Of a stretch of 64,000 nt of DNA, positions 16,801 through 61,908 are shown piece after piece. Position 1 is the first letter of the stretch. Every line of letters begins with the position of its first letter. A program made the position numbers and the translations under genes. Below the pieces are notes generated by a model. It was not told the DNA's origin, ran no database searches, and saw only the letters and a list, made by a program, of their open reading frames with translations. This DNA is from Eukaryota sp. TZLM1-RC (Eukaryota; Protista; Metamonada: BaSk clade): contig JAUPSS010000002.1 in NCBI GenBank assembly GCA_040285825.1, forward strand, positions 2,976,001 through 3,040,000. Direction: 5' to 3'.

Positions 16801-18004
16801 TGAAGACAGATTGTGTTGAAAAAATGACATTGCAATACATTGCTCAACGTAATCAAACTCAAACTTTAATAAAAACATAATTAAACAAACCAACAGAAAA
16901 ATTGCTGATGTAGCAATTTCTTCCTTGGTCAATTTTGAAAGAGAAACACCGCAATTTTCATCACGAAGATTGCTGCAATTAATATCCCTTCATATGAACG
17001 TATTTTTGAAAACTGAAAATATGAGTCTGACTCTCCAGCAAAACCTAATGGATGCAGTGTTCGCAAATAGACATTACACGAGTTAATGTGCTCTAATGAT
17101 GTTTCTCATACAATTGATGTTGGGTTCATAAACAAGTATCGCTAGTAAAAAGAACCCTATTTGTTGAAAAGACAACAATTATCATTTTCGTTCTTCGCAC
17201 TATCAGGATTTGTTAAAAATATTGTCAAAAATTTGCAAGAGAAATATTCTCTTTACAGGTCAAGACAATAAGATTCAAAGTCAGACGATGGCAAATCTCA
17301 TTGAGATGACAACAGGTGCCAATTCTGTTTCTCTTTATTTATTTTTATTGAATTAGTTTATTGGTTTTTACAATTTTGCCAATTTAAGTGGGACTTAAAA
17401 TTCCAGGAATTTCAGATTAATGGATAAGAAGCTCATGGATAGCTCAAATTGAAACTAGAAGCAATACTGAGGAAATTCGGTTGTTTTAATCAACACAAAC
17501 CTGATCGTAAAAATTTGTTATTAAAAATAGTAACAATAGTAAAATCGTGAAAACCGGAATTAAGTTCTGTGTGAAGATAGTTTTGGTGGGTAAGAGACTG
17601 TAGTGGAAAGTCCAATATCTTTTGTCAACATCATCAGTTAATTAAACAATGATACTGAAAAATTGCCATGTACCTCAAATTGTAAATAATAAGGATATGA
17701 ATTTAAAACACTTATCAAAAATACTGCAGAATGTATTGAATAAGTAGAATTGTAGTAGCATCATAGAATTAATGTCAGTGTGATTTTTGGAAATCCATAA
17801 TACAATATCTCACAAAAAAAGCCCAGAATAAAATGTAAAAACAAGTAAAAAATGCGTTCTCAGTTTTAAAACAGAATCAAAACAGCTGATCAACAAAACC
17901 AAAACAATGCAAAGGAATATTTGTAAAGAATTGATCAGGAACTTAATTGTGTATGTAGGAAGTGAATTTGTAATTCAGATTCTGCACTGAGTAGCATTTG
18001 TAGG

Positions 18005-23910: not shown

Positions 23911-24453
23911 ATGAGTGATCATCTCTTGCTTAGACGCATTGTTACTAATGGTATCAAGGCCATCTCAGACAACTGGCCTCGGTCAAACATATCGACCCAT
24001 TCTACACAATTGTGGACTTGTTCAAGGATGTCCTTTCATGCAGAAGTTCTGTAGAACAGTGCAGCAAGAAGGTAAGCAGTGTTTAAGTAACGTAGTGTAT
24101 GCTTGGCATGGTAGTAGGTTTCAAAACCTTGCTTCCATCTTTCAGAATGGTTTCGTCCATTGAGGAGGAGTGGCCAGTCTCTAGGACCCGGGGAATATTT
24201 TGCTGCCATCAACAATCCTGCAACATCTGATGGTTATAGTGGAGATAACGACTACCTCATTCTCACGGCGATTATACGCTTATCTAACTTCAATGACCAT
24301 GGTGGTGTTTATGTAATCAATAATGACAGAAGCGGTAACTCAAGTCATTGCCTGCCTTTATGTGCTGTTAGGAATCCTGCTCAAAGAGTGGCACATCAAG
24401 GAGAGATTGCATTTACGTCACAAACTTTTGTACGTTGGTCCTTTGGGCATTAA
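23911..24453 (+). pseudogene. Mini-PARP pseudogene, close paralogue of 16255-16800 in inverted orientation
   Basis: MSDHLLLRRIVTNG start; frameshifts near 23977 and 24156; WHGS and GPGEYF retained. Confidence 0.85.
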
Positions 24454-27482: not shown

Positions 27483-27633
27483 CTTTTATGATTTACGTAA
27501 TCACCCTAATTTGAAGCTTAGGTTTGAGAGAAAGTTGATTAGAGGCTGGACCCTGATTTCTCAAATTCCTGACGAACAATTAGATTTGATCCAAAAATAT
27601 AAGCATCTTTACAAGCCAATTGTACAGTTGTAG
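27483..27633 (+). pseudogene. Diverged copy of the last ~49 codons of the 2486-aa gene
   Basis: FYDLRNHPNLK...KYKHLYKPIVQL* followed by the same 3' flank as at 46015. Confidence 0.9.
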
Positions 27634-27679
27634 TTTTTTTATTGTATAATTTATTGTATATATTTTTTAAATTATTTAA

Positions 27680-28535
27680 TATTTATTGAATTTTCACAAT
27701 TAATTAAATTAACTCATAATTAATGGGACAACTATCATTGAACCAAGATTTCCTCTACAAGAGCTTGATCTTGTTGCTGTCTAGCTACCGCTTCTCTGAT
27801 TTGATTGAAAAACCAAAATAATCTATTAATAATGGCAAATTGAATCCGGGAGCGCCATAAAAAATATCAAATCTTTTCATTGTTTTTTCTTGAACCATTT
27901 TTTGGAAGTCATTCAAAAAAGTTTTGCTTCTACTGATATCTTCCGTTTATTGAAAATGGGAAAGCAATAAACACCAGCTGTGTATTTCTATCGACATTAG
28001 CCTCTTCAATATTTTTATAATATTTTCTATGTTTTTCTTTTGCTTTAAAATCAAGAGCACTCACAGGATTAAGTTTTCTTCTGTGAAAATAAAGTATCAT
28101 TTGCAACATTACATGAGACAAAGTCAACAATAGCTTCAGAATTATGAATCCAATCACAGTATACATCACCTCTATCATCAGAACCAAAATTATTCAGAGA
28201 AAATGTTTCCTTCAGCAGAGGTTCTGATGCCGTTAGGCAGATGAACACACGAAGGAGAGAGAGTGAAAATCTCAGTTTATTAATAAAACTGATTCATAAA
28301 CGAGTATCACGTCATCAGTCGAAATACAAAGAAACCTATTAAATCAATTTAAGTTCAACAACAACAGTTCTTTGATACACGATATTCTTGCAGTTCGAGC
28401 CATATTAAAAACAGTTTCTCTAACAACATCATGTGATGAAGAACAAAAAGTTATCAATTTCGAACAATTCAGAGCATGTCGCAAAGTGAGCTGTGGTCAA
28501 TTCGAACAAATACATTTTTCTTTTGATAATGATTG
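27680..28535 (-). mobile_element. 5'-truncated CRE-like subfamily B copy
   Basis: Collinear with 47125-47840; DDRGDVYCD and FIAFPFSINGR endonuclease motifs. Confidence 0.85.
28225..28366 (-). mobile_element. Probable solo LTR (142 bp)
   Basis: TG...CA termini (TGTTG...CATCA on minus), AATAAA inside, 4-bp TSD gttc at 28221-24 and 28367-70; it interrupts otherwise continuous CRE-B sequence. Confidence 0.75.
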
Positions 28536-28599
28536 ATTAATGGGAAAAATTTGGTTCACCCAATTTCGTCTCAATTTATGTTGGATTGATTCTTTTGTA

Positions 28600-31492: not shown

Positions 31493-32749
31493 TTAATAAA
31501 ACAAAATCATTAATAAACTAAACAACAATATAATACTGACCAATACCAAGGAAACCATAATCAGCTTAGATCTTCGTTTTATAAAACAAATCTCAGCATC
31601 TCCCCTTTCAACACTGGAACGTAAATCCCTATTAGCTTTTCGTAGAGGAACAACACTGTCTTTTAGAGTTTCGTTCTGTTGTTGAAGATTTTGCAAAACA
31701 ATCTCCAATTGAGAAAGTTCCTCTCTGAGACCAGATACTTCATCCTTGTAGCCATCAACAGTTTCTTTCAATTTGATATTTTTAAGCTGTAATTTTTCAC
31801 AACGAATTTGTGATTTTTGTATTTCAATCTTCAATGTTTCAATCTGATCATTCAATGTATCAATTTCAGCCTCATTTTCAATTCTCTCTTGAATATTGTT
31901 TCCTCTGGTGTCATCATTTCCGCATATTGGGAGGTTTGCTATGGGAAAAGAATTTGTTAGATGATCTAAAACTTTGATTATATCAAAAATACTGGGTCTG
32001 TGGTGAGGATTTGAGTCAAAGCACTTGGTAATTAAAACTTTCAAGTCAACAGGTATGGTTTGAGGAAACGAAGGCTGATAGTTGTTGATCTTTGCACGAG
32101 TAATCTCAGACATAGAGCTACACCCTTCAAATGCCAGACGTTCAGTCAACAGCTCGTAGAGAATAACTCCCAAGGAATAGATATCAGAGGACTCACAGAG
32201 ATGGTTATCAAAGGCTTCCAGCGGAGTGTATTTTAACGAAATGAGAGGAGAAGAAATCTTCCGTGAAACATCTGAATCCGAGTTTGACTTCTGAGTTTGA
32301 ATGGAGTTGTAGAATCCAGAGACTCTGACACGTTCATCCACAAGCCAAATCTTATCAGGTGTAAGATCTCCATGAATCAGATTGGATGAATGAAGACACG
32401 CTACCGCTTCACATAACTCCTTAGCTAACCTAACGGTAGAATGGCAGAAAGTAGAAGGAACTTTTAGGGATGTGGAGACTGGTTCCACCACAATGGCGTT
32501 TTGATTTCGGTAATGTGTTGTTCCGTGTACATGAAGAATACCTGGGTGATCTAGTTGGGAAAGGGTATTGAGTTCCTTTCGGATAAGTGAAGTATCTATC
32601 ATATCCGATGACCATACTCTAACTACCACGTCAAGACTGTTCCATCTGGCAGCAAATGTGTCAGCAAAATCATCCTTGTTAATCTTAAACTCTCTAACAA
32701 TTTGCAAGTGGGAAGGTTCTATATATGGTAGCGAAAGCTCACGATCCAT
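31493..32749 (-). CDS. TKL-like pseudokinase + coiled coil + C-terminal TM anchor (418 aa from ATG 32749)
   Basis: Kinase fold motifs LDHPGIL, HGDLTP, YTPLE, SDIYSLG, RPS; VAxK is VVVR, catalytic-loop N is K, DFG is GFY; hydrophobic C-terminus. Confidence 0.85.
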   Translation of the reverse strand: MDRELSLPYIEPSHLQIVREFKINKDDFADTFAARWNSLDVVVRVWSSDMIDTSLIRKELNTLSQLDHPGILHVHGTTHYRNQNAIVVEPVSTSLKVPSTFCHSTVRLAKELCEAVACLHSSNLIHGDLTPDKIWLVDERVRVSGFYNSIQTQKSNSDSDVSRKISSPLISLKYTPLEAFDNHLCESSDIYSLGVILYELLTERLAFEGCSSMSEITRAKINNYQPSFPQTIPVDLKVLITKCFDSNPHHRPSIFDIIKVLDHLTNSFPIANLPICGNDDTRGNNIQERIENEAEIDTLNDQIETLKIEIQKSQIRCEKLQLKNIKLKETVDGYKDEVSGLREELSQLEIVLQNLQQQNETLKDSVVPLRKANRDLRSSVERGDAEICFIKRRSKLIMVSLVLVSIILLFSLLMILFY

Positions 32750-34045
32750 GATGGGGAGAAAAGATGTCAATCGATTGAGAGGATCACCTTGTCAATCATT
32801 GATTGGTGATAATTCCCTAAATTCCACAAATTCAAGTTGGAACTCTAAATTAAGTTAAATTTAAATATTTTCACAACAATAAAGCAACTTTAAGTTGTTT
32901 GCAATTCACGTGCTATCATGTTTCGGCCAGGTGAAGTTGTTTGCAAGCAAATTCAACCCTTGCAGTCTGTTGCTTGATTGATTGAATTTACCTCAATGTG
33001 ACTTTGATTTTTGTCATCTCGTAATTTCTGTTCTGTGTGTTCCTGGAAAACATGCAGTCGTATAAGTATAGATTAGTATGAAAGAACATACATTTCTGAT
33101 GGCATTCGATCTCGATTTTTGAATATACATTGATATATTTCTGATATATTCTTTGAAGTGTTTGAATCCTCAAGTCTCAATAACAATCAAAACCAAACGG
33201 TAAAGTTTGTTTCATGTTCTATGTCATATCATCAAATTTGTGACCCTGAAAAGTGGATTTTGATGGATCGTGTCAAAGAGATCTCCTCCATTGTCAGCAT
33301 GTTGCTTACTGATTTCAGAAAAAGCATTTTTGAACATGTAGAAGTGACTGTCTAACAGGGGTGAAACAAGAGTGTAGATCAAATTTAAAAAAACAACAAA
33401 AACAACAGTGTAACTAAATTGGTCTTGGTTTTGGCCAAGAAATTTCTCAATAAGCAGTGACAAAAATCAAGAATATCAACATTGGAGAATACACGAACCT
33501 TTTTTGTGAGAACAGATAAATATACTATTAGTGAAAAGTCAAATTTACTATTCCAATTTTGCTAACTTTTGAAAAGAAATGAAATTAATTGTCCTTGCTT
33601 CTTTCAACTTTGTGGTTGAAAAACTTTGAGATTTAATAAGACTATGATACGTGATGATTTTTTATTTCCCTGCATGTTTCATGATGTTTGGTCAAAAGGG
33701 GAGATGTGGTGTTGTTCAGAGTAGGTAATTAGTGACCAAAACAGTAACGGACTGTGAAAAGATTGACGTTGATGTTGCGTTGAGCTACCCTTTGCGATAT
33801 GGGTGCTTTTTTTGATAAGTTTGTTTCAGTTCAACAAAATATCTTCAATGGGAAAAAATACAAAAGTACAAAATACCCTGTATTAGTATATACAGATATG
33901 TACAAAATAGGACAATTTTAGAAAGTGTTTTTCGAAAATTGTTACCTCAATAGAAAGTGTTGCGTGAAACTAAGTGATCCGAAGAACAGCAACCCTGAAT
34001 CTGAAGAATAAATTATCATAGGAAGAATTGGTACCTCAGGTCTTT

Positions 34046-34793: not shown

Positions 34794-36073
34794 CTACAAC
34801 CCACTTTCGAAATACAATCGCACCCTTTTGTCTTCACTCGCACTCGCTATCGCACCCTCCTGGGAAACCTTTACATCTCGTACTGGACCCTGGTGACCCG
34901 TGACAATTTCGCTTGAAGTTCCAGTCACTGTATTCACGAGAGTTAGGTTATTAGAATTACCATTAGAGACGACCAAATTTTCAGCTTTTGGCAACCAGCT
35001 CACTGAAGGTCGATGTAACGTGGCACCAATGTCGATAGTTTTTAACCTTTTACCATCAGCAACCATTCGACTATCAATCAGTAAGAGTGATCCAAGCATT
35101 GTCGTGATTGCCAGGTAATTACCACCCTGACTAGAAGTCACATCAGCAACTTTACTATCAAATTTGATAGATGAGGTTTGCGAAAGTGACCGTATATCAA
35201 ATGATTTACAATAATGATCGGCAGTTCCGACTGTGATTGCTGACGTGATAGGGTTAACATCGACACTGAGAATTGCGCCATAATCATCATTGTTGTTTGA
35301 CTCACGTTGACCAAAAATTTTAAAATTTGCGTCTGTTGACACATTCAAAAATTTCAAAACAGGACTCTCAGTTCCAGCTATGATCCAGTCTCCCGAAGGC
35401 AACCAACTTATTGACCTAACATTATGACCTAACGATGACGTGGCAAATGAGTTTTTCCCACCCAAATTGCGCGCCACATCAAATAATGAAACAATACCGT
35501 CACGGCCCCCTGATGCCAAAAAAGGGGCAAAAGGATGAAATGACAATGTGTTGATAAAATCTAGGGTTAGAGTTAGGGTTACGTACCAGAGTGACCAAAA
35601 AAGGTTTTGACAACAGGATTAGAACTGGAAACTGTATGTGAGGAACTTTCTCTTGACCGAGACCTAGCCTTACTCAAGTCAATAAGCTTGACGGAAGTAT
35701 CAGCGGAGCCAGAAGAACACCACTTTCCATCTGGTGAGAATGCCACGCAACGACAGCAAGATTTGTGAGGGGAGTGGTAGCGATCATCATAGAGAGGAAA
35801 GGAGGGTGGTTGTTCCATTATAATGGTGGTGTCGTCGGGTATGTCTACATCAGGAGGAAGTGAAGAGATATGGGGATCGAATTGACCTTGGGAATACTCA
35901 GAAGAAAGGCCTTTCTGAACTATAGTTTCGAGACGATTTGAAGGAATAGAAGGGTCATGTGGAAGTTCAAGTGAGTTTGCTAAAGATTCAGCAGCAGCTG
36001 TATGGCCATCATTTATAAGCTGAGAGAGAGCTAGTTGGTAGATATATTGTTTGGAAAGAAGTGAGCTGCTCAT
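34794..36073 (-). CDS. CSTF1: Cleavage stimulation factor 50-kDa subunit (dimerisation domain + WD40); 26-nt intron 35561-35586
   Basis: IYQLALSQLINDG...PSNRL N-terminal domain; HKSCCRCVAFSPDG...GSADTSVKLID; PVVKTFFGHS|DFINTLSFHP joins the two listed ORFs. Confidence 0.85.
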
Positions 36074-38553: not shown

Positions 38554-41500
38554 ATGTTTGGTAAATCATTTGACTCAACGCAGGATGATGACTTGATTTC
38601 CAACATGACTGAAACCACAATTGATCCTAATTTGGCGTCCCAAAGAGGGAGATGCAATCGTTCCAGAGCACGACGAGGGGGTAGAGGTCGCTCCTCACGT
38701 GGTCGTGGTAGAGGATCTCCCAGAGGCCGTGGTGGTACCATTTCTCAAAAAGGCACAACTTCTCCACTCAATATTTCCCACAACGATGTATCCCTTTTCT
38801 GGAATGTTTCTCCCGATTCCGAAACTCCCTCAATCTCTGTCCACGTCTCTTCCACACCCCTTCCTAATCCTTTGGTCCCTCCTGACAGCAATGAACTTAC
38901 TGATCATGTCAAGTTTCCAGATGTTCTCTCCTATGACGTCACTTTAGACGATGGCTTCTACTTTATTTATTTCTATCAAAATGGTTGTTTTACACTCAAC
39001 CCTGCTTATCCTGTACATGACACTTATAATCACAACTTCTTCACGGTTGCTCCCTCCGAACTCCGAAATCAGCTCCACCTACTGACAGGTCTGACCCCTA
39101 ACGAAGCTCTTCTGTTTCAATTGGAGTTTTACTTTTCTGACGACAACTTTGTAGTTGGGGGTGGCATGCATTCGGCATCATTCAAGACTCAAACAAAACC
39201 TGCCAGATGGGTCCCCTTTGATTTTATTCTTACCTTTAATTTCTTCAATTCTCTGGCCAGTACGTACAATATTGACCTATCTGCAGAATTTCTTCATGAA
39301 TTAACTCAAAGCAGTGATACTATTGAAAGTGACTTAAGATATGGTATAAGAAGAAAGAAAGCTTCAGTCCCAACACATGAATCTTTAAAGACAAGGAAGT
39401 TAGCCATATTTCCCCTCCTTTCCACTGATGAGGTACTTGATGTGGTCCATCAACTTCATTCGCTCGATGTTACTACTTCCTCTTTTATTGCTTACTTTAA
39501 AGAAGGATGTAAGGCGATTAGGGCTAATGTTACAGTTCAAGATTCCATTGATGCGGTGATGCTTGTTCAAGGTAACTCTATTAATGTTAACGGTAGAGAT
39601 CTGATTGTGCGTTTTGAGCATCAGTTCAATCAGAATTTTGGTAGTGACACGTCATCAGTGGCTTCAAGTGAGGCTGATGGGACAAGATCGATAAACATAC
39701 GTAATCGCCACAGACGTAGAAGAGCACGGACCAAAACTTTTCAACAACGATGCAGGGATCGTGAAAAGACGGGTTTGCCGATTTTGACCGCTTATGACGA
39801 TATTATTGATCGTATGGAGAATGAAAAAGTTTTAGTTTGTATAGCTGAAACAGGATCAGGTAAGACAACTCAGCTTCCTCAATTCAGCGCTGAATATTGT
39901 TTCAAAAAGTTTGGTAAAGGTAACTTCAAGGTTGTGTGCACTCAGCCAAGAGCAATAGCCGCTCTTTCCCTTGCAGATTTTATTGCCATGGAATATGATG
40001 GTACTAAACCCGGTAATAATGTTGGTTATAATGTCGGTCAAAAGAACGTAAATGGTGACGAAATACTACTGACTACTGATGGTTCCTTAATCCGCAAAGC
40101 TGCAAAAGATCTCTTACTATCAGATGTAAAGGTCTTGATCATTGATGAAGCGCATGAACGTAGTTTGGATACTGACATTGTGTTAGGAATTGCCAAACTG
40201 ATTCTCCAACAGCGAGATGATTTTCGAGTTATTATTGCTTCAGCAACTATTGATCCTACTCCTTTTTTGCAGTTTTTCAATGGACCCAATGTAAATAAAA
40301 ACCTTGCCTTGCGTGTCCCCGGTAGACTTTTCAATGTTGGTGTTGAAGAAGAAACTGTTAATAGTGAAACTTTGATTGAAGATTTGCCTCAAATTGTCTG
40401 TACAGCTATGCATAACCCACTTTATTACAAAGACCGTATGCCAAATGGCCATGTTTTGGTTTTTTGTTCAGGGGCAAAAGAAATTGACATGTGCGTTGCC
40501 AAGTTTAAACGAATGATCTTGCAAAGTAGCGGTCAACTTAATCACATTGAAGTGCTTCCTCTCCATGGCAAACTGTCGCCGGATCAACAACAAGAAGTTT
40601 TGAATTTCGATAAGGTTGTCAATACTGACGGTAACTACAGAATGGTTTGTTTCTGTACAAATGTGGCTGAGACCTCGCTCACAGTCCAAGGTATTAAACT
40701 TGTAGTGGACACTGGTCTTGCCAAGGAGGCCAGATATTGTCCTAAGAGAAGAATTACTATTCTCCAAGAAGTTTTCATATCTAAATCTTCGGCTGACCAA
40801 CGGAAAGGTCGTGCTGGTAGATTAAGCGAAGGTCATTGTTTAAGACTTTATAACTATGAAGAAGATCTCGAAAGGGACTCAATTGAACCTGAAATACTTC
40901 GATCTTCGTTAGATTTTGTTGTTTTAAAGCTCACAATGCTAGGTCAAAATCCAATCACTTTTGAACTCATGGATAGACCTGACGAGCAAGACTTGATTAA
41001 TTCACTACACCTTTTGGAATCCTTTGGATGTATTAAATCTTATTGCGAGGTAAATGAACTTGGGAGGTTTTTCTTTGAGCAAAGCTTGGACGTACGACTA
41101 TCATTTTTCGTTTATCTGTGTGGATGTCATGGATATCTGGAGGAAGGGGCTTTAATTGCGTCTATTATTTCTGCACCAGGTTCCATATTTTTCTTTGGTC
41201 AGGATACTCAGAAACAGAGACAGGAAGTCCAGACAAAACGTAAGGAGCTTGCAAGTAATTTTGAAAGTGATTTACTTTTCCTTTGTTCAGTATACTCTCA
41301 ATGGAAAAAAGTTGCGGATAAGAAGATGAACATGGCTAAGATATATGCGATGGAAAATGCCTTGAATAACAAAATTTGTACCATGGTCAGGCTAACAACC
41401 TCTCAAGTAACAAGGAACTTTAAAAATGCACAGTTATTTGAAGAGGTACTCTCAAATGATCGGGAAAATTCTGATCTCAGTAATGTTATTAGCGGGGCTC

Positions 41501-44500
41501 TTGTACGTTGTTTTTCAGAACAAATTTGCCAATTTTTAGATTCGTCCATTCCAGGGAGAACTGATGTCTTCCTTCTTGATTCATCTTTAAAAGGAAGAAT
41601 TGCTCGTGAATCTTGTTTGTTTTCAAAAAAACCTTCCAGTAATTATGGCGTGGGTTTATCTATAACCGATAACGGTATTTCAGCTTTTGTCAATTTAATT
41701 CACCAAATTAATTCATCATTTATTCCTGCAAAACTACTTGATTCTATCCAAAACAAATCAATTCAATTGTCTAAAGAATCCCTTTGTTGCAATGTAGGAA
41801 GTTATTATTTCACTCATTTTCTTCGATCTTTTAGGGCATATCAAGCTCAACAACCCAGAAACTCCACTGTTCATTTTGTCGAGCTCGATTATGTTGATGC
41901 AAATATTGTAGCAACTGGACCTGCTGATGTGTTGAGAACATTGAAGCAAAAGTGTGAAGAAGAAGTTTGTAATTTAAAGGCGTCCAAACTCCAAGAATCC
42001 CAGGTTTTTAATTTTGAAAATTATTCATTTGCTATCGGAGAAGGTCTTGTTTTAAACCATCTAGATGTACCAGGACCCACACTCTGTTTGAAGCGGCCTG
42101 CTGAAGAACGACGTCACGAATTTGAAGAATTTGTGAATGGTGCAATTGGAGCACGATTAATTCGGGAAATCACCAAGGAAAGTAAAGTTCCCATTCAGTA
42201 TTCATTAGGTCGTTTGAGTAGACAACAACTGCACGATCATGATTCCCAAGCCAGGAACAAGCAAAGAGGTTTTGTTACTTTACCACCTATTAGCCAAGAT
42301 CTTTTTGCTTCTATCATGAATAAGTTGGTTGAAGCTGGTGTGCTTAAGGAGGATGTTGAAGAGGCTGAGGTAAAGTCGTGTAAGTTTGGCTCATCGTTTG
42401 TTTGGAATACACTCAAAGACAGCAAGGAAATTGCCCAACAACATAATTGCAAGACTAAACTTTTAGGTAGGAGTACAATTTCTGGATTTTTTTACGATTT
42501 ACCAGGGGGTACCACTAAAAAGCAGTTAGATGGGGTTATTAATAATTCGAATGTGCAGGTTGAGTCCTGTGGCAGGGACAATTTCAACACTAAGAAGGGT
42601 TTCAAGGTCACTGGAAGTCCAAGTCATTACGCAGTCGCCAAACAAAATATTATGTCTTCTCATCTATTTCAACCGTTTCAATACTCGTTCACCAATCCTT
42701 CAGGACGTACCAAGACAAATACAGCTACTCCTAGATTAAACCACGAGCTTTTACCTCAAGTTTTGCTGATGTTTTCTTCTTCAAATCACTGCCATGAAGT
42801 GTTTAATCAACTCTGTTCTCAAGGGCATGATGTTTATTTCAATTACCATCTTCCATTGGGTAAATTGAAAGGACTTCCAGTATCCACTGTATCCAGTAGT
42901 CTTTCCCAGTATGGGGTTACTGTTGATACAAGAAAAGGCATTTCAATCACTAGTCAAGATTTACCCAATTTTGTCAAAGCTTGTTATGCATTAGATAATC
43001 AAATTAAACCGATTAAACTTACTTACATGGCTCCAGATCAGGTTGCATTAATTGATGAATTAATTGAATTAAATCTTCTTAATCAATGGGAAACTGAATA
43101 TGGTGTAACAGTTCACCGGAATTTTGAAACAATGGGTAGAAACAGGAAGAAGCATTTTCTAACGATTTATGGAGACGGAATGATGCAAGGTCAGTTTCTG
43201 AGGGCCATCAATGATTATGCGGCGGAGTTTAGAAACCGCTTTGAAATCATTTCCGTCAATAAGGCTCAAAAAAGCCTATTTTTGGGTAGACGCGGAAATG
43301 ATAGGTTTACTCAGTTTTGTAAAACACTCAAAACACAGCAACACATTGATATTGACATTGATTCAATTTCTAAGTCTATTAGCACAAACCTAATTTTTTC
43401 ATCGCAGCTCCAAATTTATATTAAACCCGAGTCATCTATTAATTTAGAATCAGTCAAACAATTCATTGACAATTTCCTTTTAAGTCAGGGAACTGATGTT
43501 ACTTTGGACCCAAAATCATGTTGTTTTTGCTTTAAAAGTTCTACTGCTGGCAATACCTTCTTCCATTGTGGACATTCTTTTTGCAAGGGATGTTTAGTAG
43601 ATCAAATTAACAGCGTTTTTTCTAATGGGATGGCCTTGGATCCTAGTTTTGATGGTTTGAAATGTCCTTATTGCGATACAAAAATCAGCTGTATTGATAT
43701 AAGACGTTGTTTTGATCAAACTTCTGACTTTTTCCACACTATCCAGAAGGCTATTCAATGTAATATTCTTTCATTTCCAGGTGTTTTCCCCAATATCACT
43801 GTTTGTAAAAAAGACAATTGTGGTGCTATTATGGCAAAAATGAACACCTTCCACTCGTGCCCCCAATGTGGATCAGGGCAGTGTGATAAGTGTGGTTGTG
43901 TCGATGACGTTGCACATTCAGGAATTTCTTGCGAAGACTACGTAAAATTAAAGAAAAGTTCAGGAAATTATTTGGAGCGATTATTCAAGGATGCTGAAAA
44001 ATTTGTCGAAGATTTATGGAACATTACACCATCACTTGCTTCCAAATGCAGAAATCCTTGTTTGCTTCAAGGGTGTCCTGCCATCCAACGCTTTGTTAAG
44101 ACTGTTCGAAAACATGGAGTCTCATGCCTTTCTCAGGTCAAGTTTGCTTGGCACGGGACTAAGGCTCCAGCTGTTGCATCAATAGCTTACGATGGTTTTG
44201 ATCCAAAATATAGAAGTGGGCAAGCATGTGGACCTGGTGAATATTTTGGAGTCGCTGAAAAGCCCGCGGTTTCAGTTGGTTACTCAAGCGGCTGTCGTTA
44301 CATGTTTGTTGCCGCCATTTTGCCATTAGATGGTGTGTTTTCTGAGCGATCTGGATTTTGTTACGTGGTAAACAATCCACTTGACTTTGAATCAACGTAC
44401 TGTCTGCCTTTGTTAGTACTGGAAATGGATCGTCCAGAGATTGCCCGGTCTCAAATCGACTGGAAACCTGTCAATCCAGTGGTACCTGTTCATTTTGAAG

Positions 44501-46014
44501 CACATTCATTAAACACTGTAAACAATGACAGTGACATCCAGTGTGTAGCTTCCTGGTTCTGGCAAGATGATTCTCAATGGGAGCGATATACGGACCAAAT
44601 GTCAAGATTAATCGAATCTCAGTACAGCCTGGCTTGTTTAAATGAATCTCCTTCGTCATTTGTTGCCACCAGTATTGTTCGGTTAAGGGACGATGTTCCC
44701 CAGGATTACTTGATCAACTTTGATGATTATTCACAGAAGAACATGAAAACATCCTATACAAGGAAGATCAAGAGAGAAATTGTCAAGGTTGATATGTCAC
44801 CAAAGTGCACTTGGCAATATCTTGATCAAGGTCTATGGAGATTGTATGATCTACACAGTCACAAAACCATTGACGATGCATATCGAAAGTACCTACAATC
44901 AGCTTCGTCTTCTGTTATTAAACTTAGGTTCCCTGGACGTCCTGAAGAGTATCTTATTAATTTTGCTGACGGAACTCAATTAAACACTGAATCTGGAACA
45001 AGAAGAAAGATTAGAAGAATTGAAAATCAAGCAGCAGCAGCACCTTCTTTGACCAATTTTTCAGTTAATCTTTATGAATTGTCTTCTGTAGCTTCTATTG
45101 AACAAAGAGTTTTGGCCAAGTTAAACGACATGGTTTCCAGAGCAGCCAGTGTCAGCCAGTTGAACTTGGAGGATAATGAATCATTAACATTTTCCTTTGA
45201 TGATAGCCAGTCGGCTTTCTGCTTAGGGATCCCTCAAGCACTGGATAACATTTCAGTTCTTCTCAATGCTGTCGTTCATCGTGAATTAGCAGCTTGTGAT
45301 GTGACCATTGATTATGGCGATAGCGACGATGACATGATTGATTCAAATCCAAGACTTCGACGTTTACTCAGTGGCATTCCTCCTCCTGATGAACTTCTCA
45401 ATAGAGAAACCATTCTGGAATACTTTTGTTATGTCTTAATTTGGAAATGCAATTGTACTATTTATGGGGGCTATATCAGAGATTTTATTATCAGAAATGT
45501 TGCAGCCAATGATATTGATGTTTCTTGTCCAAATGATGATTTGGATTGCGTCATAGAGCTTTTCAAAAAGGAAGTTTCTAATTCTGGTTTCAATTGCATT
45601 GTGAAATCAACACATCTTGTCAATGATGTTTGTAAACGTGTAAAGGTCAATTTTGGAAGTTACTCTGTTGATGTTGATTTCACCCCTCCCAATGCTTCGA
45701 GAAGGCACTCTGATGCTGCCCCTCCCTACGTTGAGGCTGATGTCAGTAATCTCCAAATCAGCAAAGATAACTATCTTTCATTCAAGGAGCCCGCTGCGTG
45801 TGCTACTTTGAACTTATCATTAGCAAATGTATTGGAACATTGTCTCAACCAAGAATTTATTTTCTTTTATGATTTACGTAATCACCCTAATTTGAAACAT
45901 AGGTTGGAGAGAAAGTTCATCAGAGGCTGGACCCTGATTTCTCAAATTCCCGACGAACAATTAGATTTGATCCAAAAATATAAGCATCTTTACAAGCCAA
46001 TTGTACAGTTGTAG
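38554..46014 (+). CDS. Giant multidomain protein: RG-rich - La motif - RRM - DEAH helicase/HA2 - RING - IBR - PARP catalytic - WWE - WWE - nucleotidyltransferase (alternative start ATG 38529 via a 28-nt intron 38556-38583)
   Basis: QLEFYFSDDNF (La, ~39110); ETGSGKTTQ 39844, DEAH 40144, SAT, TNVAETSLT, QRKGRAGR 40798; C3HC4 RING 43519-43675; IBR 43804-43933; WHGT 44149 and GPGEYF 44230; WFWQDD and WQYLD WWE repeats; GGYIRD...DID...D 45463-45680. Confidence 0.9.
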   Translation: MFGKSFDSTQDDDLISNMTETTIDPNLASQRGRCNRSRARRGGRGRSSRGRGRGSPRGRGGTISQKGTTSPLNISHNDVSLFWNVSPDSETPSISVHVSSTPLPNPLVPPDSNELTDHVKFPDVLSYDVTLDDGFYFIYFYQNGCFTLNPAYPVHDTYNHNFFTVAPSELRNQLHLLTGLTPNEALLFQLEFYFSDDNFVVGGGMHSASFKTQTKPARWVPFDFILTFNFFNSLASTYNIDLSAEFLHELTQSSDTIESDLRYGIRRKKASVPTHESLKTRKLAIFPLLSTDEVLDVVHQLHSLDVTTSSFIAYFKEGCKAIRANVTVQDSIDAVMLVQGNSINVNGRDLIVRFEHQFNQNFGSDTSSVASSEADGTRSINIRNRHRRRRARTKTFQQRCRDREKTGLPILTAYDDIIDRMENEKVLVCIAETGSGKTTQLPQFSAEYCFKKFGKGNFKVVCTQPRAIAALSLADFIAMEYDGTKPGNNVGYNVGQKNVNGDEILLTTDGSLIRKAAKDLLLSDVKVLIIDEAHERSLDTDIVLGIAKLILQQRDDFRVIIASATIDPTPFLQFFNGPNVNKNLALRVPGRLFNVGVEEETVNSETLIEDLPQIVCTAMHNPLYYKDRMPNGHVLVFCSGAKEIDMCVAKFKRMILQSSGQLNHIEVLPLHGKLSPDQQQEVLNFDKVVNTDGNYRMVCFCTNVAETSLTVQGIKLVVDTGLAKEARYCPKRRITILQEVFISKSSADQRKGRAGRLSEGHCLRLYNYEEDLERDSIEPEILRSSLDFVVLKLTMLGQNPITFELMDRPDEQDLINSLHLLESFGCIKSYCEVNELGRFFFEQSLDVRLSFFVYLCGCHGYLEEGALIASIISAPGSIFFFGQDTQKQRQEVQTKRKELASNFESDLLFLCSVYSQWKKVADKKMNMAKIYAMENALNNKICTMVRLTTSQVTRNFKNAQLFEEVLSNDRENSDLSNVISGALVRCFSEQICQFLDSSIPGRTDVFLLDSSLKGRIARESCLFSKKPSSNYGVGLSITDNGISAFVNLIHQINSSFIPAKLLDSIQNKSIQLSKESLCCNVGSYYFTHFLRSFRAYQAQQPRNSTVHFVELDYVDANIVATGPADVLRTLKQKCEEEVCNLKASKLQESQVFNFENYSFAIGEGLVLNHLDVPGPTLCLKRPAEERRHEFEEFVNGAIGARLIREITKESKVPIQYSLGRLSRQQLHDHDSQARNKQRGFVTLPPISQDLFASIMNKLVEAGVLKEDVEEAEVKSCKFGSSFVWNTLKDSKEIAQQHNCKTKLLGRSTISGFFYDLPGGTTKKQLDGVINNSNVQVESCGRDNFNTKKGFKVTGSPSHYAVAKQNIMSSHLFQPFQYSFTNPSGRTKTNTATPRLNHELLPQVLLMFSSSNHCHEVFNQLCSQGHDVYFNYHLPLGKLKGLPVSTVSSSLSQYGVTVDTRKGISITSQDLPNFVKACYALDNQIKPIKLTYMAPDQVALIDELIELNLLNQWETEYGVTVHRNFETMGRNRKKHFLTIYGDGMMQGQFLRAINDYAAEFRNRFEIISVNKAQKSLFLGRRGNDRFTQFCKTLKTQQHIDIDIDSISKSISTNLIFSSQLQIYIKPESSINLESVKQFIDNFLLSQGTDVTLDPKSCCFCFKSSTAGNTFFHCGHSFCKGCLVDQINSVFSNGMALDPSFDGLKCPYCDTKISCIDIRRCFDQTSDFFHTIQKAIQCNILSFPGVFPNITVCKKDNCGAIMAKMNTFHSCPQCGSGQCDKCGCVDDVAHSGISCEDYVKLKKSSGNYLERLFKDAEKFVEDLWNITPSLASKCRNPCLLQGCPAIQRFVKTVRKHGVSCLSQVKFAWHGTKAPAVASIAYDGFDPKYRSGQACGPGEYFGVAEKPAVSVGYSSGCRYMFVAAILPLDGVFSERSGFCYVVNNPLDFESTYCLPLLVLEMDRPEIARSQIDWKPVNPVVPVHFEAHSLNTVNNDSDIQCVASWFWQDDSQWERYTDQMSRLIESQYSLACLNESPSSFVATSIVRLRDDVPQDYLINFDDYSQKNMKTSYTRKIKREIVKVDMSPKCTWQYLDQGLWRLYDLHSHKTIDDAYRKYLQSASSSVIKLRFPGRPEEYLINFADGTQLNTESGTRRKIRRIENQAAAAPSLTNFSVNLYELSSVASIEQRVLAKLNDMVSRAASVSQLNLEDNESLTFSFDDSQSAFCLGIPQALDNISVLLNAVVHRELAACDVTIDYGDSDDDMIDSNPRLRRLLSGIPPPDELLNRETILEYFCYVLIWKCNCTIYGGYIRDFIIRNVAANDIDVSCPNDDLDCVIELFKKEVSNSGFNCIVKSTHLVNDVCKRVKVNFGSYSVDVDFTPPNASRRHSDAAPPYVEADVSNLQISKDNYLSFKEPAACATLNLSLANVLEHCLNQEFIFFYDLRNHPNLKHRLERKFIRGWTLISQIPDEQLDLIQKYKHLYKPIVQL

Positions 46015-47324
46015 TTTTTTATTGTATAAATTATTGTATATAATTTTTAAATTATTTAATATTTATTGAATTTGCTCACTTAATTCAATTAACTCATAAC
46101 TAATGGGACGACTATAATTGAACCAGGATTTCCTCTACAAAATCTTGATCTGCTTGCTGTCTAGCTAAAGCTTCTCTTATTCGATTGAAAAACTGTGGTA
46201 ATCTATTAATAATGGTAAATTGAATCCGTGAACGCCATGAACAAATATCAAATCTTTTCATTGATGATAGCCAGTCGGCTTTCTGCTTAGGGATCCCTCA
46301 AGCACTGGATAACATTTCAGTTCTTCTCAATGCTGTCGTTCATCGTGAATTAGCAGCTTGTGATGTGACCATTGATTATGGCGATAGCGACGATGACATG
46401 ATTGATTCAAATCCAAGACTTCGACGTTTACTCAGTGGCATTCCTCCTCCTGATGAACTTCTCAATAGAGAAACCATTCTGGAATACTTTTGTTATGTCT
46501 TAATTTGGAAATGCAATTGTACTATTTATGGGGGCTATATCAGAGATTTTATTATCAGAAATGTTGCAGCCAATGATATTGATGTTTCTTGTCCAAATGA
46601 TGATTTGGATTGCGTCATAGAGCTTTTCAAAAAGGAAGTTTCTAATTCTGGTTTCAATTGCATTGTGAAATCAACACATCTTGTCAATGATGTTTGTAAA
46701 CGTGTAAAGGTCAATTTTGGAAGTTACTCTGTTGATGTTGATTTCACCCCTCCCAATGCTTCGAGAAGGCACTCTGATGCTGCCCCTCCCTACGTTGAGG
46801 CTGATGTCAGTAATCTCCAAATCAGCAAAGATAACTATCTTTCATTCAAGGAGCCCGCTGCGTGTGCTACTTTGAACTTATCATTAGCAAATGTATTGGA
46901 ACATTGTCTCAACCAAGAATTTATTTTCTTTTATGATTTACGTAATCACCCTAATTTGAAACATAGGTTGGAGAGAAAGTTCATCAGAGGCTGGACCCTG
47001 ATTTCTCAAATTCCCGACGAACAATTAGATTTGATCCAAAAATATAAGCATCTTTACAAGCCAATTGTACAGTTGTAGTTTTTTATTGTATAAATTATTG
47101 TATATAATTTTTAAATTATTTAATATTTATTGAATTTGCTCACTTAATTCAATTAACTCATAACTAATGGGACGACTATAATTGAACCAGGATTTCCTCT
47201 ACAAAATCTTGATCTGCTTGCTGTCTAGCTAAAGCTTCTCTTATTCGATTGAAAAACTGTGGTAATCTATTAATAATGGTAAATTGAATCCGTGAACGCC
47301 ATGAACAAATATCAAATCTTTTCA
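45197..47324 (+). repeat. Apparently perfect 1064-bp tandem duplication (45197-46260 / 46261-47324)
   Basis: Covers the NTase-coding end of the giant gene plus the adjacent retroelement 3' end; TTG microhomology at the junction. Confidence 0.9.
46398..47078 (+). CDS. Duplicated stand-alone nucleotidyltransferase ORF (226 aa from first ATG); expression unknown
   Basis: Identical to the C-terminus of the 2486-aa protein. Confidence 0.4.
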   Translation: MIDSNPRLRRLLSGIPPPDELLNRETILEYFCYVLIWKCNCTIYGGYIRDFIIRNVAANDIDVSCPNDDLDCVIELFKKEVSNSGFNCIVKSTHLVNDVCKRVKVNFGSYSVDVDFTPPNASRRHSDAAPPYVEADVSNLQISKDNYLSFKEPAACATLNLSLANVLEHCLNQEFIFFYDLRNHPNLKHRLERKFIRGWTLISQIPDEQLDLIQKYKHLYKPIVQL

Positions 47325-49105
47325 TTGTTTTTTTCAACCATTTTTTGGAAGTCATTCAAAAATGTTTCTGCTTCATCAGATAATCTTCCATTTATCGAAA
47401 ATGGGAAAGCAATAAAAACCAGCTGTGTATTTCCATCAGCATTAGCCTCTTCAATATATTTATCATATTTTCTATGTTTTTCTTTTGCTTTAAAATCAAG
47501 AGCACTCACAGGATTAAGTTTTCTTAATTGACCCAAAGTATCATTTGCAACATTTCATGAGGCAAAGTCAACAATAGCTTCAGAATTATCAATCCAATCA
47601 CCGTATACATCACCTCTATCATCAGAACTAAAATTATTCAGAGAAAGTGTTTCCTCAGCAGAGGCTCTTTGATACACGATATTCTTGCCGTTTATGCCAT
47701 ATTCAAAACAGTGTCTCCAACAGCATCATGTAATGAAGAACGATAAGTTATCAATTTCGAACAATTTAGAGCATGTCGCAAAGTGAGCTCAGGTGAATTC
47801 GAACAAATACATTTTTCTTTTGATAATAATTGATTAATATGAATATTCAAATATAATCTCATTTTTGTTATAAACGCTTCATTAGTGGCACACAGTCCAA
47901 ATCTTCGTGGTACAATGGTCACAAACAGTGAAGAATCTGATGACTGATTTTCACAAACACCTTTTTCCAATAGCAATGAGTGAAGATCTTGATTGAAAAC
48001 AGCCGAGTTGCATATATTATTATAAGGATCTTTTTCATACATTTCAGTCAATCGTTTCTGTAATGTTCGAAGAGTGTACTTCAAATTTAAAACATTTTTT
48101 CTGGAATATTGCCATTGAATGATTGGGGAAAACATCGACCCCATTTTCTGCATCATTTTTTGAAATTTCTTCATTTAATGCAAAAACAGTGGAACTTTGC
48201 GTTGACATCAATAAATCTTCCCAAGCTGCAAATCTTTCAGAATACTCAAAGATTGCATTTCTGCATCCTCCAACAAAAGCACACGAGGTAAGAATAGAAG
48301 CCTTCATCCACCCTAAACCACCATAATGTGGACTAAGGTAAGCATGATCTGGAATTTGGAACATTTTACATCCCAGTAAATGAGACAGAACTTTTGCACG
48401 TAACTCATTAAACTTTTGAGCCAAAGGTCTAGTGACGAGAGGATTTGTAGATCGGAATATATGATTAAAATTGAAACTAAAACACAGTCTTATAATGGTA
48501 AATTTGATGTGTTTTTGTATATCTAAATTTATCATTCGGTCAATTTGTCGGAATTTGAGTTCAACTTTTCAAACAATTTTTTGGTAATTTCATCATTATT
48601 TCCTAAAAACGAACCCAAATGACGAATATCATCAATTAGAATATAATTTGACTTGAATTTCACTGCCATCAACTATTGTAGAAACTGGAAAATTGGATAA
48701 CAAAACACATTTAAGTAAATTAAGTCGGAGACCAATTTTGGTAAACAATTCTTTAAAACATACAGTTGCTTGTTTCACAATATTTAAATCACTAATAAGC
48801 ACAACATCATCCATATATGCAATTATTTTTAGAGAATGAAACATCTCTTGAATTTGCAATAAAATAGGATGAATGGCCAAACAAAACAAAAAAGGTCCTA
48901 ACGGATCTCCTTGCTTTACACCACTTGATGAACTCAAAATGCAATTACCAAAGTGTAAATAAGAATATGTGCTATATGTTGATTGAAAATACGGCATTAA
49001 TTCAGGCATATATTGCAATAAAGCACCATGGATACTGCAACTACTTAGTGAATTGAATACATTACTAAAATCCAATGACATACAAACATTGGATTCATTT
49101 TGGCT
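47125..49105 (-). mobile_element. Degenerate CRE-like subfamily B element, RT core to 3' end, tail-to-tail with the giant gene
   Basis: LDFSNVFNS, SSGVKQGDPLGPFLFCLAIHP, AYMDD, GGLG, CCHC, HDAV. Confidence 0.9.
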
Positions 49106-49289
49106 CATTTTATAGTTTCTCTTCATTGTATAAATTATTGTATATATTTGTTTACATTTCATCATAATTTTTTAATATTGTTTTAAACCCATAAATCAAC
49201 ATCCAAAAAATCCATCTCTCCCAAAACAGAAGCATCAGATGCAACTCTCGTATAATGCGACGCAAAAAAAAGCACAGCATCAGAAACCA

Positions 49290-60638: not shown

Positions 60639-61275
60639 TCAACTCAACAAGGACAAAAAATTTATTTTATATTCAGTTCTATCGTTTTCTATGTCCATTT
60701 CAATACAGTTCACCAATTTGGAATTATTTAGATATGGTGAATGGTAAAACTGGCCATTAGTCCATCCTGCGTGCTCAAACAGTGAACTACAATCATATAA
60801 TCGTAGACTTTCCAAAGCAGATAGTATAGTATAGTAACTTTGTTTACATTTTGACAGTATTTTTTGGGACAATTTGTGAGAATATTTTGCGTCTTTAAGA
60901 ATACGGTAAAGTGTTGTTTCAGACAAAGTTTTACTAAAGAGTTGTAACGCTATCTTTTTCATTTGATGTAAAAATAGCTGGGGATCGACATCAACGATTG
61001 ACAGAAGGGTAGTAACTTCCGAAGAGTCTAGTATTCTATTTTTTCTCCGTCGATATGGACCCCACAGGTAGGAGTCAAATGATTGCTTGAGCCATCGGGA
61101 AATAGTGGATTGTGACACACTATACTGTTTTGCAATCTCTTTTTGAGTGAGAGGCTGAAAACGGTGAGCAGCACACGCGCGAGCCCTGGTGTCATCCGAA
61201 CAATGTAAATTAAGTGATAGAAGCTGTTGGGCCGATTTAACTTCAGAAAGTATGCGAAAAGTCAACGGCATATTG
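60639..61275 (-). mobile_element. IS630/Tc1-like transposase remnant: HTH domains, DDE core deleted
   Basis: TQKEIAKQYSVSQSTISRW; DPQLFLHQM...LSETTLYRILK...YSHK; no DDE residues follow. Confidence 0.65.
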
Positions 61276-61908
61276 TTTGGGGGAGTTTTGGGGGGAAACT
61301 GAAATTGGGAATGTTTGGGGGAATTGCATTCAACATAAAAATCAACCACAGTACGTGTGGATTTTGGTGTTGTCCCAATTTTTTTGCTTTTGCCATTTTC
61401 TTTATCCCTTAAATTACTTCAAAATCACGACATGTGAAATCGAACGATTTTTTGTGTTGTTCTCTATTGCAGGTATTTGCTTTTGTGAACTATTCAATTT
61501 CTTCTTTAAGATATTCAATGTTGAAATACTGTTAAAAAGTCACATGGATAACTGGGATGCCAACACATAAAAAATTGTGAAGCTGAGACGGAAAAATAAT
61601 GGTTTCCAAACAGAAAGATGAAACAGAAGATGCCATCTTACCATTGATGTCTGGAGAACTGTAGTGGTATTTGGTTCTATATTTAATTAGCTTTCCGTCG
61701 ATAAATTATTATCTATTATTCATTTGGACGTGTAGCAGAAAAATAGAAAAAATAACATTAAATTAAGATAAATATACTATTATAATTTTACTTATATTTA
61801 AAATTTATAGTCAGAAAAACAATTAAATATCATTTTAAGAGACTTGTTGCATGGGATAGAAGAAGATTGAAGGTGTATGACACTAATGAGGACGTGTAAG
61901 AAGAGGTA

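Follow-up and report, generated by a model that had tools for sequence, protein, structure and literature searches.

In the anaerobic protist Skoliomonas litria, does a single gene encode a protein that joins RNA-binding modules, a helicase, ubiquitin-ligase zinc fingers, ADP-ribose modules and a nucleotidyltransferase (NTase), and what would such a protein do? The window analysed here, a 64,000-nucleotide stretch of DNA, contains an uninterrupted open reading frame (ORF) of 2,486 codons plus a stop (Table 1). At the local GC content of ~36–40%, we estimate that a stop-free run of this length would occur by chance with a probability of ~1e-78. An orthologue from a sister species, Skoliomonas sp. 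TZLM3-RCL (P0198, 2,476 aa, 44% identity) aligns from residue 30 to residue 2,484 of the query and keeps every catalytic motif, and end-to-end orthologues and paralogues occur in three Skoliomonas genomes. The ORF is one genuine gene, encoding a giant protein with several predicted enzyme activities, as a preliminary description of the locus had proposed on seeing one polypeptide; the domain identities and order given there also held, each by profile or fold evidence. Since searches with the single sequence were too weak for the La, PARP, RING and NTase domains, we used family profiles and folds, on which these identities rest.

Table 1 Coordinates of the features of the gene and its tandem copy, in positions of the window.
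Feature	Residues	Position	Strand	Evidence
Whole ORF		38554..46014	+	ORF scan, translation, GenBank comparison
RG/RGG-rich low-complexity tract	30–61	38641..38736	+	Translation, motif scan
Small β-sandwich	~94–166	38833..39051	+	AF2 strands, Foldseek
La motif, winged helix	~179–272	39088..39369	+	Pfam, profile, Foldseek, VIA
RRM, directly after La motif	~274–356	39373..39621	+	AF2, Foldseek, VIA
DEAH/RHA helicase core with winged-helix/ratchet/OB extension	~400–990	39751..41523	+	Pfam, sequence search, motif scan
Middle region	~991–1640	41524..43473	+	hhalign, Pfam names of DEAH11-type domains
RING1, C3HC4	1656–1707	43519..43674	+	Ligand conservation, family profile
IBR, C6HC	1751–1793	43804..43932	+	Ligand conservation, family profile, Pfam in relatives
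Compact PARP-like ADP-ribosyltransferase domain	~1830–1990	44041..44523	+	Pfam, family profile, motif scan
Two WWE domains	~2010–2155	44581..45018	+	Pfam
NTase, class II CCA/poly(A)-polymerase-like head and neck	2260–2486	45331..46011	+	Family alignment, AF2, Foldseek, VIA
Tandem copy with second NTase coding segment		46261..47327	+	Perfect match to 45197–46263

The helicase matches DHX15, Prp43 and Prp2 (E 5e-76) in an alignment reaching residues ~920–990, and its motifs I (GxGKT, residue 431), II (DEAH, 531), III (SAT, 563) and VI (QRxGRAGR, 749) are intact. The middle region lines up collinearly with its RNA-binding/RRM-like/KH-like counterpart in DEAH11-type helicase-RBR ligases. Comparison of the whole post-helicase region with DEAH11-type proteins by hhalign gave a probability of 99.7% (E 2.3e-26) over 808 columns, which makes the likeness to plant DEAH11/12-type proteins drawn in the preliminary description an apt one; the alignment stops after the IBR. 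All zinc ligands of RING1 and IBR are invariant or near-invariant across the family, and the RING-IBR family profile matches HOIP, HOIL-1 and TRIM32 (E 2e-7 to 7e-6; RING1 against TRIM32/HOIP, E ~1e-6; IBR against HOIP, E 2.4e-7). Pfam finds the IBR in four relatives and gives the RING an E value of 0.08 on the single sequence. No Cys/His cluster of the RING2/Rcat type lies between the IBR and the PARP-like domain and, because RING2 is absent, the protein has no RBR-type catalytic cysteine. Of the E3-like zinc fingers claimed earlier, RING1 and IBR therefore stand, whereas the RBR is incomplete, with the PARP-like domain in the place of RING2.

The ‘helicase’ subfamily of RBR ubiquitin ligases is known, ancient and often lost (PMC2904391). 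Its members (Plant I; Arabidopsis DEAH11/DEAH12 type) have the same order of DEAH helicase, RNA-binding/KH-like middle, RING1 and IBR, whereas here RING2 is exchanged for the PARP-like domain, two WWE domains and the NTase, and an N-terminal La module is added. As judged from its sequence, the protein is a descendant of this subfamily that has kept the helicase-to-IBR chassis.

Between the RG-rich tract and the La module, the small β-sandwich shows a weak likeness to the AMPK-β glycogen-binding module (Foldseek E ~0.01–0.02), which leaves its identity uncertain. The La module itself (residues ~179–356) consists of a winged helix with an RRM immediately following, the arrangement seen in genuine La protein and LARP7. 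Although Pfam scored the single sequence at 20.7 bits, under the La cut-off of 37.1, a profile of five sequences from this region matched exclusively La/LARP chains (E 1e-5). The AF2 model of the region (pLDDT 71) found LaM+RRM1 of human La as its top 11 matches in Foldseek (E 5.5e-7), with a VIA Z score of 12.3 over 166 residues. The fold and identity of the La motif and RRM in the preliminary description were thus upheld, but its intact motif did not extend to the 3′-end-reading residues. Residues equivalent to Q20, Y24 and F55 of human La are common to genuine La, LARP7 and this module, and the Y23 position is Phe; at the D33 position this protein has Gly and two paralogues have Asn, and F35 has no counterpart, so that the full set of six 3′-end-binding residues is not present. 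In human La, D33 is the aspartate that reads the RNA 3′-OH, and its loss weakens the case for 3′-end specificity of this module. The module also differs from genuine La and LARP7 in lying inside a 2,486-aa enzyme. When the N-terminal 311 residues alone served as the query, the only homologue returned was a paralogue from the same contig that has just a La module, and this route gave no link to canonical La. Among the relatives compared, only skoliomonads have the La head.

Measured against canonical catalytic domains, the PARP-like domain falls short by ~40 residues, and Pfam PARP matches the single sequence (17.1 bits) only in its first half, at profile positions 44–101 of 199. Pfam PARP reached E ≤ 0.001 in 12 of 20 relatives, and the family profile matched PARP12, PARP10, PARP15, PARP14 and ZAP (E 5e-7 to 3e-4). 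With PARP12 and PARP10 (both E 5e-7) and ZAP among the best matches, the earlier comparison to PARP12/ZAP-like proteins was well chosen. Of the NAD+-pocket residues, H1867, G1868 and Y1897 are invariant and S1907 and Y1910 nearly so, and this nicotinamide-pocket H-G, Y, S, Y pattern is kept across metamonads, oomycetes, rotifers and Hydra. The third residue of the PARP triad is Glu where polymers are formed and Ile, Leu or Tyr in mono-transferases. In our family alignment, no acidic catalytic residue was evident at this position; going by the motif pattern, an invariant cysteine, C1936, probably sits where PARP1 has its catalytic Glu.

Given the compact domain, the half-length Pfam match and the lack of an evident acidic residue, the PARP-like domain may only bind NAD+ or ADP-ribose. 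The whole protein would then serve as a scaffold, activated by RNA, to which an E2 and other factors are recruited, with a PARP domain comparable to that of ZAP, which is inactive and appears among the profile matches. We consider this unlikely, as ZAP has lost the pocket His whereas here the pocket residues are invariant or nearly so from metamonads to Hydra, and as PARP10, PARP12 and other PARPs with an H-Y-hydrophobic triad are catalytically active as mono-transferases. On the reading that we prefer, the domain would mono-ADP-ribosylate a protein or an RNA end using NAD+.

The two WWE domains that follow are recognised by Pfam in two stretches (75.7 bits against a cut-off of 21.1, E 3.8e-21). 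An RNA-binding head, WWE and a mono-ART-type PARP domain also share one chain in the CCCH-WWE-PARP proteins (ZAP/PARP13, PARP12 and PARP7). Here, however, the WWE pair comes after the PARP-like domain rather than before it, the RNA binder is a La module and helicase rather than CCCH fingers, the third triad residue is probably Cys, and RING1-IBR and NTase are additional. Deltex E3 ligases and DTX3L-PARP9 likewise combine WWE, RING and an NAD+/ADP-ribose-binding domain adjoining the RING; they have a DTC domain where this protein has a PARP fold.

The C-terminal domain carries the GG..RD and DxD residues G2305, G2306, R2309, D2310, D2320 and D2322, invariant in 43 family sequences; a third aspartate, D2375, is shared by at least 90% of these, D2396 and N2399 are also conserved, and D-x-D-V-G-N and H..F-V-F-F-Y are family-specific motifs. 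The top fold matches of its AF2 model (pLDDT 95.4) are class II CCA-adding enzymes (Foldseek E 3e-6), and comparison with the T. maritima CCA-adding enzyme (VIA Z 11.7, 175 residues, rmsd 3.8) spans residues 5–238 of the 418 in that chain. Motif invariance and fold together bear out the GGxxRD/DxD nucleotidyltransferase noticed at the outset. Searches with the single sequence in Pfam and in PDB with phmmer gave no match; the family profile reached only E 0.33 among PDB sequences (Arabidopsis CCA-adding enzyme), and PolyA_pol matched 21 of the 43 members weakly, in each case below the Pfam threshold. Neck motif D (ED..R) is absent from the family consensus, and with its ~227 residues the domain stops short of the body and tail domains that in CCA-adding enzymes select the nucleotide and hold the tRNA. 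The model thus suggests an apparently intact class II CCA/poly(A)-like head and neck. It has the GG-x-x-RD...D-x-D head motif and fold in common with class II tRNA nucleotidyltransferases and bacterial poly(A) polymerase I, but differs from them in its short length, its own conserved motifs and its sub-threshold Pfam matches.

This NTase is matched by 123 representative clusters and, by its sequence, defines an uncurated family usually found after two WWE domains. In short proteins it likewise comes after a WWE pair; elsewhere it is joined to a microbial-type PARG or a RING, and it also exists as free-standing ORFs and proteins. Its fold matches include TENT5 and MenT/TglT types; the best viral ones come from mimivirids and in some cases also carry RING or F-box domains (E down to 1.6e-9), and giant-virus and phage Gad2-like clusters were among the matches of an Atlas search.

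Beyond Skoliomonas, the core helicase-RING-IBR-PARP-WWE-WWE order is found in Lagenidium, Carpediemonas, Adineta, Rotaria and Hydra, and the alignment continues into the NTase in Lagenidium, Carpediemonas and three further sequences. Most eukaryotes lack the family, whose patchy occurrence takes in oomycetes, Carpediemonas, rotifers and Hydra, with several diverged paralogues and free-standing modules per genome, and locus tags indicate that its members are grouped on single contigs. Mini-PARP genes also lie within the window. The paralogue P0005 has a 3′-5′ exonuclease domain at its N terminus, and one rotifer relative carries a CCCH finger; together with the La module, these sequence features suggest a theme of RNA 3′ ends. 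All parts of the protein are known domain types, and their assembly is without a published description in the part of the literature searched, although an earlier mention may exist elsewhere; this is in line with the preliminary description, in whose view the full architecture was not known to be characterised. Two surveys of the PARP family contain no helicase-PARP architecture (PMC2964712, PMC4245714).

What might such a protein do? On balance, and by a modest margin over even odds, we favour a giant multi-enzyme helicase-RBR derivative serving in RNA surveillance or in defence against viruses or retroelements, rather than in core housekeeping. We infer this function from distribution and context: the patchy spread, the local clusters of paralogues, the swappable N-terminal heads and the viral relatives of the NTase all point to surveillance or defence. 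In such a protein, the RG tract and La module would capture RNA, and the DEAH motor would load on the 3′ single strand and move 3′ to 5′, the direction in which DEAH/RHA helicases translocate. This is close to the RNA surveillance or antiviral/anti-transposon machine put forward in the preliminary description, but four features weaken its simple picture of a protein that binds, unwinds, tails and ADP-ribosylates: the lost D33 of the La motif, the missing RING2, the probable Cys in the PARP triad and the lack of a body and tail in the NTase. The NTase may then lengthen or mark the RNA 3′ end, while the WWE pair would read the ADP-ribose mark set by the PARP-like domain and RING1-IBR would recruit a charged E2. 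RNA binding, helicase and NTase would thereby form a TRAMP-like unit of tailing enzyme, RNA binder and helicase within one chain. TRAMP (Trf4/5, Air1/2 and Mtr4) likewise brings a non-canonical NTase, an RNA binder and a 3′-to-5′ RNA helicase to one RNA 3′ end, but does so with three polypeptides, a Ski2-like helicase and an NTase of another class, and without ADP-ribose or ubiquitin modules.

The same parts could instead serve housekeeping RNA processing, with the La module and NTase maturing or repairing the 3′ ends of ordinary small RNAs such as tRNA, U6 and 5S, and with PARP, WWE and RING as regulators. The La module has its best fold matches in La and LARP7, which chaperone normal transcripts of RNA polymerase III, the nearest solved folds of the NTase are tRNA CCA/A-adding enzymes, and all motifs have been conserved over the long term between two Skoliomonas species. 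A family missing from most eukaryotes, with several diverged paralogues and loose modules per genome, a La head limited to skoliomonads and an NTase devoid of the tRNA-binding body and tail, however, makes this an improbable role. Having no RNA-holding body, sharing a chain with an RNA-sensing helicase and occurring alone in some family members, the NTase might also produce a nucleotide second messenger upon RNA sensing, following OAS- or cGAS-like logic, rather than RNA tails. This is decidedly unlikely, since its fold and GG..RD motif fit class II CCA/poly(A) enzymes and not the OAS/cGAS (Mab21) class, and since the TENT5 and MenT/TglT-type proteins that it matches all act on RNA ends.

A bolder proposal, which we regard as very unlikely, is that the PARP-like domain functionally stands in for RING2 and yields a new hybrid ubiquitin/ADP-ribose/nucleotide mark on RNA. 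RING1-IBR would hand ubiquitin from the E2 to a domain holding NAD+ or ADP-ribose, the ubiquitin would be attached to ADP-ribose, in a Deltex-like reaction but on another fold, or be relayed via the invariant Cys, and the WWE-linked NTase would extend or cap the ADP-ribosylated RNA end.

The final 1,064 bp of the gene are followed by a perfect tandem duplicate, which copies positions 45197–46263 with a period of 1,064 and carries a second NTase segment, open from an ATG at 46398 to 47078 (226 aa). This duplication was absent from the preliminary description. It could be an assembly error, but it sits 3′ of the domain fusion and is not its cause. The GenBank model (P9112_003538) differs from the plain ORF at both ends: it begins at an ATG at 38529, with a predicted 28-nt intron at 38556–38583, and its 3′ splice, over a predicted intron at 45903–46268, enters the second copy. 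We set this two-NTase model aside because the orthologue P0198 terminates with a single NTase, as does the plain ORF. Among the sequencing runs searched, no RNA run containing the locus was found, and the one run that was found is a DNA run (contigs) covering it thinly, with few exact 151–181-nt pieces. That adjacent genes run together or a misassembly made the fusion, as the possible assembly error, the discordant GenBank model and the thin coverage could suggest, is extremely unlikely in view of the 2,486 stop-free codons, the end-to-end relatives from three Skoliomonas genomes, a core order shared with distant eukaryotes and the position of the duplication downstream of the fusion.

We see the significance of the protein in two developments. 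The helicase-RBR chassis gave rise to a branch that traded the catalytic RING2 for an ADP-ribosyltransferase-like domain, and an uncurated NTase family of ~123 representative clusters, with many giant-virus proteins among its structural relatives, is habitually tethered to WWE, PARG or RING. These associations suggest that ADP-ribose signalling, ubiquitin transfer and the addition of nucleotides are connected, probably on RNA, in a way so far unexplored. Bdelloid rotifers and Hydra, both tractable animals, and oomycetes have members of the family, which makes this idea testable at the bench.

The giant protein is encoded by one ORF at 38554–46014 on the forward strand (2,486 codons, to which residue numbers refer); by our estimate, a stop-free run of that length would arise by chance with a probability of ~1e-78 at the local GC content of 0.37–0.40. 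Its best database match was a hypothetical protein from 'Eukaryota sp. TZLM1-RC', which is Skoliomonas litria, an anaerobic and haloalkaliphilic metamonad (PMC11603281). The GenBank model P9112_003538 (2,717 aa) is identical to the plain ORF over residues 7–2449 and differs at both ends: it starts upstream, and it carries two nucleotidyltransferase (NTase) domains through a splice into a downstream repeat. That repeat is a tandem duplication with a period of 1,064 (45197–46263 and 46261–47327, 100% identical), which spans the end of the NTase coding sequence and the 3′ flank, and whose second copy is open from an ATG at 46398 to 47078 (226 aa, NTase only). The duplication represents either a very recent event or an assembly artefact. 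Since the orthologue from Skoliomonas sp. TZLM3-RCL (2,476 aa, 44% identity) aligns from residue 30 to 2484 of the giant protein and ends with a single NTase, sequence comparison makes the plain ORF the likelier product and argues against the second intron. The claim in the preliminary description that a single polypeptide is encoded here is thus supported both by the uninterrupted ORF and by its orthologue.

An RG-rich tract, read from the translation, occupies residues 30–61. The adjoining region scored below threshold against Pfam La as a single sequence (20.7 bits), and a PDB sequence search with the N-terminal part alone returned weak matches, all of them to La proteins. A profile built from five sequences, including three skoliomonad giant proteins and a free-standing paralogue, matched only La/LARP chains (best E 1e-5), with one alignment covering the La motif and RRM1. 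The AlphaFold2 model (pLDDT 71) contains a small β-sandwich, a winged helix and an RRM; its top eleven Foldseek matches were all LaM+RRM1 of human La (E 5.5e-7), LARP7 proteins came next, and VIA structure comparison with human La LaM+RRM1 gave Z 12.3 over 166 residues. Together, the exclusive profile matches and the predicted structure indicate that the La module is real. Among the six human La residues that hold UUU-3′OH, the equivalents of Gln20, Tyr24 and Phe55 are retained, that of Phe35 is lost, and that of Asp33 is Gly in the giant protein and Asn in two paralogues; RNA binding is likely; reading of a 3′-OH is uncertain. The β-sandwich ahead of the La motif (38833–39051) bears a weak fold likeness to the AMPK-β glycogen-binding module (Foldseek E ~0.01–0.02). 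The free-standing paralogue (P9112_003589, 386 aa, same contig) consists solely of RG tract, β-sandwich and La module, with 59% identity to the giant protein's N terminus.

Residues ~400–990 match DHX15, Prp43, Prp2 and HrpA (E ~1e-76 to 1e-70), and all four helicase motifs (AETGSGKT, DEAH, SAT, QRKGRAGR) are present. The 650 residues that follow gave no Pfam match. A family profile running from this region through the PARP domain aligned with a profile of the segment downstream of the helicase in DEAH11-type helicase-RBR ligases (probability 99.7%, E 2.3e-26, 808 columns), bearing out the proposed likeness to DEAH11/12-type fusions. In those ligases, Pfam places RBD_DEAH11, an RRM and two KH_DEAH11 domains ahead of the RBR; this 'helicase' RBR subfamily is already known as ancient and frequently lost (PMC2904391). 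The alignment covers RING1 and IBR and then ends, and RING2 is absent; this layout fits a helicase-RBR ancestry in which RING2 was exchanged for the PARP-like domain. Every ligand of RING1 (C3HC4) and IBR (C6HC) is invariant or near-invariant in 15–20 relatives, and the pair matches HOIP, HOIL-1 and TRIM32 (E 2e-7 to 7e-6).

The ~160 residues after the IBR match PARP12, PARP10, PARP15, PARP14 and ZAP (E 5e-7 to 3e-4), and Pfam PARP is detected at E ≤ 0.001 in 12 of 20 relatives. The H1867-G1868 pair and Y1897 show no variation among the relatives, and S1907 and Y1910 next to none. An invariant C1936 appears to replace the catalytic Glu, judging from the motif F-C-Y-V-V against N-E-Y-I-V in PARP1. 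The domain is short, with a Tyr-to-third-residue spacing of 39; in human PARPs this spacing is ~64–81. A pair of WWE domains comes next (Pfam E 3.8e-21).

For the C-terminal NTase, an exhaustive HMMER search (query residues 2160–2486) yielded homologues in 123 representative clusters, located at the C termini of 1,400–2,800-aa proteins, in 400–1,100-aa proteins, or alone in ~230–300-aa proteins. The G-G, R-D and D-x-D motifs do not vary across 43 aligned members, and a third Asp and D-x-D-V-G-N are invariant or near-invariant; half of the members match PolyA_pol weakly and twelve match DUF5769. The top Foldseek matches to the confident AlphaFold2 model (pLDDT 95.4) were class II enzymes that add A, CC or CCA (E 3e-6), ahead of TENT5, and VIA aligned 175 residues of the model (Z 11.7, rmsd 3.8) with the head and neck of the CCA-adding enzyme from T. 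maritima (residues 5–238 of 418). In the ESM Atlas, searched by shape and by feature, the nearest shapes were rotifer PARP clusters (TM 0.74); giant-virus RING proteins (0.64), phage Gad2 clusters and the heads of bacterial poly(A) polymerases were also among them. Against viral models, mimivirid proteins matched best (E down to 1.6e-9), some with RING or F-box domains. Two WWE domains precede the NTase in 5 of 10 shorter proteins tested, and PARG-WWE-NTase and RING-NTase arrangements also occur; these contexts mark WWE-WWE-NTase as a mobile unit linked to ADP-ribose biology. Profile and fold evidence thus upholds the proposed order from RG-rich tract to NTase, and the domain identities and catalytic-residue conservation are shown as well.

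The helicase-RING-IBR-PARP-WWE-WWE core recurs in three Skoliomonas genomes, Lagenidium, Carpediemonas, Adineta, Rotaria and Hydra, and in several other eukaryotic transcriptomes and metagenomes. The alignment continues into the NTase in Lagenidium, Carpediemonas and three further sequences, and ends after WWE2 in the rotifer and Hydra copies. N-terminal heads differ: La in skoliomonads, a 3′-5′ exonuclease plus La region in a Skoliomonas sp. TZLM3-RCL paralogue, and a CCCH finger in Adineta. This paralogue (RCL1_005921) has ~1,000 extra N-terminal residues ahead of its La-like region and helicase, including a DNA_pol_A_exo1-type domain. Judged by locus tags, family members share contigs in clusters.

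Within the window, free-standing mini-PARP ORFs accompany the gene (Table); Pfam PARP matched the two tested (E 5e-5 and 1e-7). Among sequencing runs, none of RNA was found for the locus; the one DNA run gave thin exact coverage of the gene, with a high-copy repeat that begins after the stop codon. Since this repeat forms the 3′ flank and a reverse-transcriptase fragment lies just downstream, a retroelement probably adjoins the gene's 3′ side. The gene end and the adjoining repeat occur in a third copy, which looks like a segmental duplication.

Table. Gene-model differences and other features of the window
Feature	Position	Strand	Remarks
GenBank model start	ATG 38529	+	upstream; predicted 28-nt GT..AG intron 38556–38583
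GenBank model 3′ intron	45903–46268	+	366 nt removed, GT..AG; joins downstream repeat
Mini-PARP ORF	14677–15228	-	the three mini-PARPs 33–49% identical to giant protein's PARP-like domain
Mini-PARP ORF	16258–16932	-	
Mini-PARP ORF	24008–24393	+	
High-copy repeat (3′ flank)	~46060–46350		summed contig depth ~700 vs 2–5 on gene (one DNA run)
Reverse-transcriptase fragment	48635–49165	-	
Third copy	27483–28546 vs 45864–47843		last ~150 nt of ORF (96% identical), 3′ flank, further repeat blocks
HTH transposase-like ORF	60642–61349	-	DNA transposon near window end, with next row
DDE_1 endonuclease ORF	62398–63867	-	
BET bromodomain protein	11034–12362	-	ordinary nuclear gene
Protein kinase with coiled coil	31496–32770	-	ordinary nuclear gene
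CSTF1	34797–36073	-	ordinary nuclear gene; dimerisation domain and WD40 repeats, split over two ORF pieces

In a possible mechanism, the RG tract and La module would capture RNA, the DEAH motor would translocate 3′→5′ and the NTase would add a nucleotide at a 3′ end; the PARP-like domain would perform NAD+-dependent mono-ADP-ribosylation, the WWE pair would read the ADP-ribose mark, and RING1-IBR would recruit an E2. The closest functional analogies are TRAMP for the RNA part and ZAP/PARP12 plus Deltex ligases for the signalling part. The PARP-family surveys PMC2964712 and PMC4245714 mention no helicase fusions, and the literature searched contained no description of the full architecture. Patchy occurrence, clustering of paralogues, exchange of N-terminal heads and relatives in viruses suggest that the giant protein may serve in defence or surveillance.
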